A stretch of 64,000 nucleotides of DNA from Salpingoeca rosetta. Lineage: Eukaryota; Protista; Choanoflagellata. Under the pieces are notes generated by a model. It saw only the letters and a list, made by a program, of their open reading frames with translations, did no database searches and had not been told where the DNA came from. The DNA lies in NCBI GenBank assembly GCA_033442325.1, contig JAWQFM010000010.1, forward strand, positions 1,596,192 through 1,660,191, written 5' to 3'. Positions 1,990-8,385 of this stretch are shown here, piece by piece (positions within the stretch are counted from its first letter, which is position 1; each line of letters begins with the position of its first letter). A program made the position numbers and the translations under genes.

Positions 1990-2144
1990 ACTCTCTACGC
2001 CACGCACACACATGGTCTGTCTGACACTCTGTACGCCTCTGTCTTGCTCTCGCGCCCCGCCCCCTCTTTCTGTCACACACAAACAAGGAAGACAACAGCA
2101 GGTCGTTTACTTGGGCGTGCCGATAATGCACCAGCAAGGATAAG

Positions 2145-2775
2145 TTATGTGCGCGTGTGTAAGGTGATGTGGAGGTGGTGTGCTCGCTTGAGCCAGCGCA
2201 CACGGTGCAGATCCGAGTCGGGGTCAATGGTCTTGGGCAACGCAATGGTGAGACAGGCTGTTGTTGGTGTGTGCGTCACCTCCACTTGATCGTCCTCAAT
2301 CTCCACATCAAAGTCCGCTGCTCGCCACGTGCCATCATTGTTGGTTGCCGGCGCCACCACAATCGACTGCGTGTTGGCTTCCTCGTCAACCCTCAATGTG
2401 TACGTCAACTGCTGCTGCTGCTGCTGTTGTTGTTGTTGTTTAAGTTGTTGTTGTTGTTGTTGTTTAAGTTGTTGTTGTTGTTTAAGTTGTTGTTGTTGTT
2501 GTTGTTGTTGTTTAAGTTGTTGCTGTTGTTGTTGTTGTTGTTGTTGTTGTTGCCGTCGTCGCCTGTCCTCCTCCTCCTCCTCCTCCTCCTCCTCCTTCTG
2601 TTGCTCCTTCCCCTCTTTCCGTCCATCAGCTCGCTCGTGTACCCCTCCTGCCTCCCCATCGCCCTGTGCCCCCCGCTGCTGCGTCGGCAGGACGTGTGCC
2701 GATGCCCCGTGCTTCGCCTGAAACCGTTCAATTTCCCGCCGCAACCGCTCCTCCTCAATCGCAATGTCGCTCCTA

Positions 2776-2841
<66 letters not shown>

Positions 2842-3285
2842 CGTTGTGAAATGGGTGAGGACTAGCTATGGGCGAGGAATGCGGGAATGCTTGAGTGTTA
2901 GAGTACATGTGTCAGTAGGCTGCATGATGATGGCACACCCATGCATCCGATTGTTCCCGCTCACCTTCCGTTTGCCGTATTGCCTTGCTGCTGCTGCTGC
3001 TGCTGCTCAGCCATTTGCTTCTCCTCCAAGTCGTAGAACCAGTGGGTGACAGCATAGCGCGGCTTGGACGTCGGCAGCACCTTCCCCGCCATCAAAACGA
3101 GTGCACGGTTGCGTTGCATGCGGCACAAAGGGAATGGGTACATGCTGTCAACGTTGTGCAGACACACGGAAAAAGAGAGGCAGGCAGAAAGCGACAGCCA
3201 AGCGGCATTGCAAACACGACAGACAGACAGACAGACAGACACAGACACACAGACAGACAGACACACACAAACAAACACAGACACA

Positions 3286-3323
<38 letters not shown>

Positions 3324-5673
3324 AACAAGCAAACACACGATGGGCAACGCACTTCGTGTGGGACGCGCTTGTCTGAGAAGAAGATCACCATTGTGTCCAA
3401 TCGAGGAGGAATATCCACCAGCACTTTATCATCAAGATCACCACCACCGTCACCATCACCATCATCACGACTGCTGGCTGGTTTGTCATCGTGTGTGGCT
3501 TCCTCCTTGGACTGCGCGTACACACGCAGCTCACCGCCGTCGCCTTGCTGTGATTCCCCACCAGGAAGAGATAGTATGCATGAATGCCATCGTGACGAGT
3601 GTGCGCGCAACCACGCTACAGCATGAATGCCATCGTGACGAGTGTGCGCGCAACCACGCTACAGCATGAATGCCATCGTGACGAGTGTGCGCGCAACCAC
3701 GCTACAGCATGAATGCCATTGTGACGAGTGTGCGCGCAACCACGCTACAGCAAAGCGAATGTGTGTTGTGTATCACACTCCACAGGCAATTCTACAGCCT
3801 ATGAACCCCACCCCCACCTTCCAGCCATCGTTGAGGTAGTAGAGAACGGTGAGCTTCCTGCCGTTGCGGTGCGGGTTGTCGCAGTGCTTGATGTAGCGCG
3901 CGCCGTTGCCCGGGTAGCACGTGACCATGGCCTTGGAGCGTGATTCAAGAGTCTTCAACTCTGGCACAAGTGATGCAATCAACTGCAGTGCATGCAGCAA
4001 TCGCAAAGAGGGGACAGCACGTGGTGAGATGGAGGAGGAGGGGAAGACGGGCGGTGCCGAGATAGAATTGCTCAGCGAACGAACAGGCAAGGATGACACA
4101 CAGACACAGACACACAGACACACACACACACACACACACCTGTACGATGGTGTTCATCTTGCGGGAGAACGTCTTAAGCGCCGTGCCACGCCAACACTGA
4201 ACACCGCTACCAGCACCACTGTCGCCTTCATTCTCGTCATCGCTGTCGTTGTCGTTGATGGAATCGGCAATGGGTAGCTCGTCACGCTGCGTCGTGTCAT
4301 GGCACGGGTCTTCGTCGAACCAGCCAACCTAATGGTGGTGACGTGATAGTAAACGTGCAAGTGTTCACCATAAGCAGCGCTGTTGTAAACACAAACACAC
4401 AGACACACACAAACACACACAGACAACACAGACAACACAGACACAGACAGACACACGGACAAGACAGACAGGTGCATGAGCCATATCTGCGTACCTTATC
4501 GCCGCGAACAGCGGAGAGGATGTATTTGGTGTTTGCACCGGTCCGCCCGCCACCGAGCATACCAGAGCTCAGCCGACCCTGCGTTGAGTACAACGGAAGC
4601 AGCGGTTAGCGACTGGCAAACGGCAAACGGCGTACGCTAACGGACATGTCCATCCGCCCACTACACGCACGCACACATATACAGACACACGTACATGTGC
4701 TAACACAGGCATGCGAACGCACGCACACGAACCGCTCCATGCGCAGTTTTCACTTCTGTTGCAAGCCTGGCAGCCATCTCAGGCCCTGCGACCATGAGCA
4801 GTGCAGTGCGAACGCAAGGGTGTCAACAGGAGTCCAAACACGAGCAGGGCAGGCATACACACACAAATAAGTCGACACACACACACAAAACATTGGCGCG
4901 CGCACACGCACACACACACACACACACGAAACATTGGCACACGCACACACACACACATACGCACACACAAAACATTCGCACACACACACACACACACGTC
5001 TACATATGCACGCACCGAGGACGTTGGGCAAGATAACGTAGTTGTTGCGCATGAGTTGGGCAGCCAAATCCTTCGCCCATGCAAACACTTCAGGTTCATC
5101 CTTCATCAACTGCCTCACATGCTCGTACCGGCCGCTGTGTGTGAGCCAACAAGCCAAGGTTCGGTGGTGAGCAAAAGCACACGGTCCACCAGCACTGCGC
5201 ACGTGAACGGAAGGAATGATTGATGTAGCTTGGCAAGAGTGTGGTCACCAACTCCACACTCCACCTTCCCTTCACCGCACGCACACGCACCTATGCTTTT
5301 GGCCCTGCTCTCTGGGGATCTGAGCTTGGCCGGACGACCTCGAGCCCGTGCCTTGTGCAGCCGTCTCCTCTTCCTTCTTCTCTTCGTCGCCGTCGTCGTC
5401 GCTGTCCTCGTCGTCGCTGTCACGCTGCTTGGGTTGGGGTTGTGGCGTCTGTTGCAGTGCCGCCAAGACGGCCGCGATCTGGTTGAGCACGGCCACCGCT
5501 TCTTCCTCATCACTCGTGTCGTCAAACTTGGCCAGCTGTGCATACAGAGCCGCCTTTGTCTCCGTATCCATCCCACCCTTCCCACTGCCACCCACGCCAC
5601 TGTCAGCAGCAGCAGCGGCAGCGGCAATCGCCTGCTCCACAAGCGCCCTCGCTTGCGCCCTTCGAGTGCTCAT
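2145..5673 (-). CDS. EGLN/PHD-type 2OG-Fe(II) prolyl hydroxylase with polyQ linker and C-terminal PIH1/CS-like domain; multi-exon
   Basis: Exons encode VRGDK, AMVTCYPGNGARYIKHCDNP...RKLTVLYYLNDGWK|QGDGGELRVY, DIPPRLDTMVIFFSDKRVPHEV|LPTSKPRYAVTHWFYD. The HxD...H triad and 2OG-binding Arg of EGLN1 are intact. Start may be 5673 or 5715. Confidence 0.88.
2408..2552 (-). repeat. Coding polyQ tract with periodic LK interruptions
   Basis: (caa)n/(cag)n on the minus strand broken by cttaaa; translates QQQ-LK-QQQ in ORF 2145..2837. Confidence 0.9.
3578..3749. repeat. 43-bp minisatellite, 4 near-perfect tandem copies, intronic
   Basis: gcatgaatgccatcgtgacgagtgtgcgcgcaaccacgctaca starts at 3578, 3621, 3664 and 3707; one substitution in copy 4; no spacers. 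Confidence 0.97.
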
Positions 5674-5747
5674 CGCTGTTCGTTTGTTCGTTTGTGTTTG
5701 GCTGTTGCGCTTCATATCCGACACTGATTTCAGTCTCCACCACTTTT

Positions 5748-5756
5748 GTTGCCAAC
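5748..5756. promoter_or_regulatory. Candidate RFX-type element GTTGCCAAC in a short bidirectional promoter
   Basis: Quasi-palindrome GTTG-C-CAAC lies between the divergent ATGs at 5673 (-) and 5805 (+); it resembles the GTTGYCA X-box half-site. Confidence 0.4.
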
Positions 5757-5804
5757 ACGAAAGACAACCAACAACCAGCAACAGCACGAACACCAACGAG
5801 CCCC

Positions 5805-8385
<2,581 letters not shown>

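Follow-up and report, generated by a model that had tools for sequence, protein, structure and literature searches.

The 64,000-nucleotide stretch of Salpingoeca rosetta DNA analysed here (positions 1,596,192 to 1,660,191 of contig JAWQFM010000010.1, GenBank assembly GCA_033442325.1; hereafter the window) carries on its minus strand, from position 5673 to position 2145, a gene for an EGLN/PHD-type prolyl hydroxylase whose C-terminus is a diverged PIH1-type CS domain. The identity of this C-terminal domain (hereafter the tail) is well supported, and the whole is a new domain architecture assembled from known parts; in the literature searched, no earlier case of a PIH1-type CS module on an enzyme other than a PIH protein is known to us. 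On balance, and leaning on structure predictions, we are inclined to think that the diverged CS tail docks the hydroxylase onto an RPAP3-like co-chaperone, and would thereby link an oxygen-dependent enzyme to the HSP90 machinery.

Structure and expression of the hydroxylase gene

The gene consists of nine exons with a coding sequence of 1932 nucleotides, corresponding to about 643 amino acids. All of its introns (8/8) have GT-AG borders and measure 154-272 nucleotides each, and the reading frame is unbroken. An EGLN domain, a polyQ linker and a beta-rich C-terminus had been named in the original prediction, which was made from the letters of the window alone; all three were found on the minus strand where it had placed them. 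The stranded raw RNA reads of two runs are oriented almost wholly as expected of minus-strand RNA, and four of the junctions (5134/5291, 4577/4732, 4326/4493 and 3547/3818) are directly visible in RNA reads or contigs. An alternative start is offered by an in-frame ATG upstream at 5715, which would add 14 residues and lies inside a transcript contig reaching 5751.

The splicing of the last exon to the catalytic exons, which had been proposed as a check of the gene model, is supported by transcript contigs from two studies. The first, of 1585 nucleotides (X4 record 2), extends from 2611, inside the polyQ repeat, through to 5751, and the second, of 516 nucleotides (X5 record 4), takes in the same end. 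Between position 2767 and the start of exon 7 at 3353, each of the two has 121 letters. These comprise 117 unplaced letters and 4 that open the next aligned block, and they equal 5 nucleotides of exon 9 plus the 116 nucleotides of exon 8; introns 7 and 8, if retained, would require 585 letters. The catalytic exons are therefore joined by splicing to the exon beginning at 2772, and the junctions between exons 7, 8 and 9 follow from this arithmetic of the records. Exon 9 is one open frame with no in-frame ATG, so that no stand-alone coding gene is possible there.

The catalytic domain

In the family, Protein Data Bank (PDB) and genome searches the exons were scanned one by one, and the organism's own genome was searched as an assembly of 55.4 Mb in 68 contigs. 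Exon 6 matched the Pfam family PF13640 (2OG-FeII_Oxy_3) with 27.7 bits against a cut-off of 27, and exon 7 with 21.2 bits (E 6e-4). Compared with solved structures, exon 6 gave E-values of 9e-15 to 3e-14 with EGLN1/2 and the HIF prolyl hydroxylase of Trichoplax, and the next prolyl 4-hydroxylase (P4H) followed at 3e-3; it is about 70% identical to EGLN1 across 43 residues. The matches of exon 8 were weak, and all of them were to EGLN chains. Exon 7 had no match in the PDB, because its acidic insertion dilutes the signal. Two of the iron ligands and the residue binding 2-oxoglutarate (2OG) were placed by alignment (Table 1); the histidine of the PHE-V motif is presumably the distal iron ligand, going by comparison with EGLN, whose active site is established knowledge. 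Judged from these matches, the catalytic exons are EGLN-like and not collagen-P4H-like. When the whole genome was searched in six frames with exon 6, this locus alone was returned, and it therefore holds the sole EGLN-type gene of the genome at that sensitivity.

No MYND zinc finger was found: exon 1 has no cysteine and a single histidine, and the transcript contig ends at 5751 without a further exon. The earlier statements that the catalytic domain is of the EGLN type and that an N-terminal MYND finger is absent thus both held, exon 6 being far closer to EGLN1/2 than to other P4Hs and exon 1 being free of cysteine. A PXLE motif in the hydroxylase was also considered and was rejected, since the motif occurs nowhere in the protein.

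The C-terminal CS domain

Pfam searches with every exon left the tail, the last 87-91 residues, unmatched, and PIH1_CS (PF18201) gave no hit to either the S. rosetta tail or the orthologous tail described below at E<=1 or at E<=10. Similarly, the tail locus was not among the six-frame matches of PF18201 in the genome. Four independent lines of evidence, of which the orthologue described below is one, nevertheless indicate a PIH1-type CS domain. A six-frame search of the genome with the tail returned only the tail itself and a PIH1_CS sequence on contig 15 (E 7.8e-4, 40% identity), the CS domain with which a PIH1-family gene ends; it has 47.4 bits on PF18201 and a weak PIH-domain match preceding it. 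When the two orthologous tails were compared with this CS domain by BLASTP, E-values of 5e-4 and 2e-3 were obtained; the BLASTP comparison of the tail with a partial CS exon on contig 6 was not significant (E 0.06). Aligned as profiles by hhalign, the two tails matched the contig 15 CS domain together with its relative P0010 at 96% probability (E 4.4e-9, 68 columns). In a comparison of language-model features PIH1_CS was the top family for both tails, with 19-20 of 30 matches and a score of 0.91. The tail is thus homologous to the CS domain in the PIH1-family protein encoded on contig 15 of the same genome, and it evolves fast. The PIH N-domain (PF08190) matched on contigs 6, 22 and 15 only; the hydroxylase has no PIH domain and has the CS module alone in common with that family.

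The tail is predicted to adopt the seven-stranded beta sandwich of CS domains (HSP20/p23 fold). An AlphaFold model guided by an alignment of seven rows (A4), made of the two tails and the CS pieces of the organism's PIH1 genes, has seven strands and a pLDDT of 76.8, and ESMFold2, which was run without alignment in a complex job, gave the tail a pLDDT of 78. The best 50 Foldseek matches of the model were all CS or alpha-crystallin domains, led by the CS domains of Shq1 and human PIH1D1 with TM scores of 0.73-0.76. The PIH1D1 CS domain in its complex with RPAP3 (6gxz_D) had a Foldseek TM score of 0.73, and VIA-align superimposed 80 of 88 residues on it with a Z score of 10.6 and a root-mean-square deviation of 2.0. 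The likeness of the tail to PIH1-type CS domains, which had been noticed from its pattern of residues, is thus borne out by the genome search, BLASTP, hhalign, language-model features and predicted fold alike, and the suggested examination of its fold by AlphaFold and Foldseek returned the CS/HSP20-like fold.

An orthologue in a marine metagenome

Nine hits were obtained when 1.84 billion representatives were searched for relatives of the tail. One of them (P0006) is a true orthologue; the other eight are repetitive bacterial proteins and were judged to be spurious. P0006 is an open reading frame (ORF) on a 1637-bp marine metagenome contig of the ENA (L007), which contains the equivalents of exons 6, 7, 8 and 9 on one strand and in unchanged order. 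The fusion is therefore present in a second organism. The identity between the orthologues is 78% in exon 6 and 37-39% in the tail. The linker of L007 lacks the polyQ repeat, and a conserved helix leads directly into the CS domain. On the same contig (745-1524) the intron between the equivalents of exons 8 and 9 is open in frame, and ORF callers give one product of 259 amino acids.

The helix at the start of exon 9 (IEEERLRREIERFQAKHG) has 15 of its 18 motif residues identical in P0006 (alignment A1; L007 1021-1080) and is much better conserved than the CS tail. It had no family match; it may serve for dimerisation or as a second site of interaction.

A word-indexed search with residues 34-201 of P0006 found only P0006 itself, and the same kind of search with the contig 15 CS domain found P0010, a single close relative, which comes from marine metagenomes, Tara among them. 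No relative was found when the JGI metagenome contigs were scanned with alignments A1 and A2. This survey beyond the genome covered metagenome-derived proteins and contigs, where a blank says nothing on other choanoflagellates.

A predicted RPAP3-like partner

Formation of the R2TP heterodimer requires the CS domain of human PIH1D1 and residues 400-420 of RPAP3, directly after its second TPR domain (TPR2), and these suffice for it (PMC5902453), and the gripping of a short post-TPR region by a CS domain has been proposed for other pairs of a PIH-like with an RPAP3-like protein (PMC5974087). Contigs 28 and 3 of the S. rosetta genome each carry an RPAP3_C gene, which makes at least two in all. 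The contig 28 gene is a single long ORF encoding RPAP3_C and two TPR domains, and its TPR2 is, among natural proteins, nearest to those of SPAG1 and RPAP3. In the encoded protein a lysine-rich [LM]VIEEVDE motif occurs twice, ahead of TPR1 and about 35 residues past TPR2. The PDB alignment of the RPAP3-like piece spans TPR2 only; LVIEEVDE, which lies beyond it, may correspond to residues 400-420 of human RPAP3, where the sequence probably reads KKVIIEE.

When the complex of TPR2 plus motif with the tail was predicted, an ipSAE of 0.62 was obtained, compared to 0.00 for the best control; of 78 solved complexes 51 attain this mark, and of 108 mismatched pairs 2. Three runs shared at least 49% of their contacts, and the pLDDT of the partner was at least 77. 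In the confidently predicted interface, residues 161-174 of chain 1, which are exactly KKKKKLVIEEVDEE, lie on two strands of the tail, FDVEIED and HRVRWLKRA, and it is in these two segments that conservation between the tails and PIH1 CS domains is highest. The [LM]VIEEVDE motifs also resemble the C-terminal MEEVD peptide of HSP90 as well as the CS-docking strand, and might fold back on the protein's own TPR clamps.

Four PIH1_CS loci were observed in the genome (contigs 15, 6, 22 and 3), three with a PIH N-domain match nearby and one with the CS domain only. Taken at the level of domain matches, the PIH1_CS and RPAP3_C genes appear as a full R2TP-like toolkit, as is expected of a flagellate.

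The original prediction had seen in the gene a Rosetta-stone fusion tying the hydroxylase to the HSP90/R2TP-like machinery. The predicted docking on the post-TPR2 motif of an RPAP3-like protein gives a tie of this kind support in silico. What has to be modified is the contact, as the known partner of a PIH1-type CS domain is RPAP3 or Tah1 and not HSP90 itself; the parallel with the MYND-p23 contact of animals therefore holds for the pathway and not for the contact.

Alternative explanations

Several observations weigh against the proposed explanation, and they are given here together with its rivals. The tail lies below the Pfam thresholds for PIH1_CS and CS, and PDB sequence searches with the tail alone and with a two-sequence profile gave no CS match. 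AlphaFold run on the sequence alone produced a poor and unusable model (pLDDT 42), and the alignment that guided the better model contains genuine PIH1 CS pieces, so that this fold model is biased and not fully independent. The docking score may reflect memory of the solved PIH1D1-RPAP3 and Pih1-Tah1 complexes; since such similar complexes have already been solved, the docking shows likeness and not binding, and which member of the family binds cannot be read from a complex prediction. On a first rival reading, the tail has a CS/HSP20 fold with another role, such as direct binding of HSP90 in the manner of p23 or Sgt1, self-association like that of small heat shock proteins, or the binding of some other lineage-specific partner, and the RPAP3 docking would be an artefact of family likeness. 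By fold alone the small heat shock protein alpha-crystallin, Sgt1, Shq1 and PIH1D1 CS domains are indeed tied in VIA-align (Z 9.5-10.8), and the tail has diverged too far for the PIH1_CS profile to match it. However, the sequence evidence is specific to PIH1_CS and not to p23, Sgt1 or small heat shock proteins, and the predicted interface unites the best-conserved segments of the tail and PIH1 CS domains with the motif expected from the RPAP3 literature (PMC5902453). We regard another role of this kind as unlikely, if still a serious contender.

Further points against the proposal concern the rate at which the tail has changed. It is 37-39% identical between the two species, against 72-76% for the PIH1 paralogue and 78% for exon 6 of the hydroxylase itself; the linker is a variable low-complexity stretch, and the fusion is known in two organisms only. 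All this would suit a drifting relic of a PIH1 exon duplication that has no role, the enzyme being a free-standing hydroxylase. Nevertheless, both species retain the frame, the position at the end of the protein and the pattern of the CS core, the residues common to both tails sit on predicted strands and on the predicted interface, and the exon is expressed and spliced. We therefore consider a relic to be quite improbable.

The last points against the proposal concern the transcript. No single RNA record spans the polyQ repeat, since the CAG/CAA stretch from 2398 to 2610, which was masked in the read mapping, breaks every contig, and the RNA depth over 2050-2436 is 2-4 times that of the upstream catalytic exons, which may be due to 3' bias or to an additional short transcript. 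The connection of the CS-coding part (2148-2408) with the spliced part of exon 9 (2611-2772) is thus indirect: the ORF is uninterrupted and has no in-frame ATG, the reads are on the same strand and the orthologous exon in L007 is free of the repeat. That the gene model is an artefact, with the CS stretch on a separate transcript and the hydroxylase ending, when intron 8 is retained, at the in-frame TGA (2963-2961) just past the exon 8 donor, is nonetheless hardly credible in view of the two contigs of two studies from which intron 8 has been removed with exact arithmetic, the single open frame of exon 9 and the L007 exon, where the helix runs straight into the CS domain. A separate gene for the tail was rejected on these same grounds.

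Comparison with known systems

The hydroxylase has the same type of catalytic domain as animal PHD2/EGLN1, with the HxD...H and Arg residues intact, and a tie to the HSP90 co-chaperone network, which exists for the animal enzyme, is here proposed for the choanoflagellate one. The zinc finger (MYND) of animal PHD2 binds the PXLE motif of p23 (PMC6916684). In contrast, the choanoflagellate enzyme has neither a MYND finger nor a PXLE motif and carries a C-terminal CS domain instead; exons 5 and 7 moreover contain long acidic insertions.

With PIH1D1, yeast Pih1, PIH1D2, DNAAF2 and DNAAF6 the hydroxylase shares a PIH1_CS-type domain at the C-terminus, and the grasp of the post-TPR2 segment of RPAP3 by the CS domain of PIH1D1 is predicted for the hydroxylase tail as well. 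Unlike these proteins, it has no N-terminal phosphopeptide-binding PIH domain but a dioxygenase in its place, and its tail is below the PIH1_CS threshold and evolves much faster. The CS domains of p23, Sgt1 and Shq1 and the alpha-crystallin domains of small heat shock proteins have the seven-stranded beta-sandwich fold in common with the tail, whereas no signal of them was detected in it at the level of sequence, and their partners (the N or middle domain of HSP90, Cbf5, or self-assembly) differ from the predicted RPAP3 contact.

Features of the locus

The features of the gene are listed in Table 1, together with the motifs of the RPAP3-like protein.

Table 1. Positions of the hydroxylase gene features in the window and of the motifs in the RPAP3-like gene
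Feature	Coordinates	Strand	Evidence or remark
Exons 1 to 9	5673-5291, 5134-5016, 4785-4733, 4578-4495, 4328-4140, 3982-3818, 3547-3353, 3080-2965, 2772-2145	minus	
Exon 1, Ala-rich and acidic N-terminal region, 127 aa	5291..5673	-	Start codon 5673-5671
Exons 2-8, EGLN/PHD-type 2OG-Fe(II) dioxygenase catalytic domain	2965..5134	-	Pfam, EGLN matches, RNA junctions
His-x-Asp (H-C-D) of the iron triad, exon 6	3878..3886	-	Aligned onto HxD of solved EGLN1
Distal iron-binding His (PHE-V motif), end of exon 7, presumed	3356..3358	-	
2-Oxoglutarate-binding Arg (PRYAVT motif), exon 8	3057..3059	-	EGLN2 alignment (RYAIT)
Conserved predicted helix, start of exon 9	2706..2772	-	Orthologue alignment and splicing to exon 8
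PolyE / Arg / polyQ(LK) low-complexity linker	2409..2603	-	Encoded by CAG/CAA/GAG repeat
Diverged PIH1-type CS domain, C-terminal, 87 aa, seven predicted beta strands	2148..2408	-	
Stop TAA (2147-2145) and short 3' untranslated region	2100..2147	-	RNA contigs end at 2100/2101 (X4 record 1, X5 record 3)
Near-identical [LM]VIEEVDE motifs, contig 28	L014 1818-1856 and 3294-3335		

Intron 6 contains a 43-bp unit repeated 4.1 times with 99% identity (3578-3752). The RNA depth is 2.5-2.8 in the bin 3598-3726 of this intron, and a contig (X5 record 5, 3520-3607) crosses the exon 7 boundary into it, which suggests that intron 6 is partly retained. Upstream of the gene, reads of opposite orientation pile up at 5662-5900, where seven molecules end at 5758, the hydroxylase contig itself ending at 5751; the arrangement suggests a bidirectional promoter common to the hydroxylase gene and a plus-strand gene with an ORF start near 6081. 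A few reads of opposite orientation were also seen in the stranded runs over the 5' part of exon 9 (2566-2823, depth 0.3-2.3), and they could come from antisense transcription or from mis-mapping of the repeat.

Implications for oxygen-dependent hydroxylation in choanoflagellates

By analogy with PIH1D1 and Pih1, the tail would clamp the lysine-rich LVIEEVDE segment behind TPR2 of the contig 28 RPAP3-like protein, and the long flexible spacer would tether the hydroxylase to an HSP90/R2TP-like co-chaperone. The enzyme might then stand where PIH1 proteins have their client-binding PIH domain, and, more speculatively, it might carry out the oxygen-dependent hydroxylation of prolines in clients or components of HSP90/R2TP, in an organism without HIF. 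Choanoflagellates, S. rosetta included, have a PHD and are reported to lack HIF-alpha (PMC9618697); the non-HIF substrates put forward in the original prediction would follow from this absence. S. rosetta senses oxygen, and dimethyloxalylglycine (DMOG) was without effect on its aerotaxis in a preliminary test (PMC5122458), so that the fast oxygen response is probably independent of this enzyme.

A bolder and rather improbable extension of this proposal is that, in a lineage that is sister to the animals and has no HIF, the sole PHD is a subunit of an R2TP-like HSP90 co-chaperone, a PIH1 look-alike in which the PIH domain has been swapped for a hydroxylase, and that oxygen gates the assembly of large complexes with the help of chaperones. 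The complexes so gated, if this were true, would be such as axonemal dyneins, PIKKs or polymerases, and the MYND-p23 contact of animals would be a second solution to an older need, so that the connection of PHD with HSP90 would not have been invented by animals.

To the question of the role of PHD before HIF the architecture contributes a testable partner, the RPAP3-like protein, and a motif, LVIEEVDE, in an organism that is amenable to gene editing and proteomics. If the docking is as predicted, the architecture would mirror the connection of animal PHD2 with p23 and HSP90 through a different structural route.

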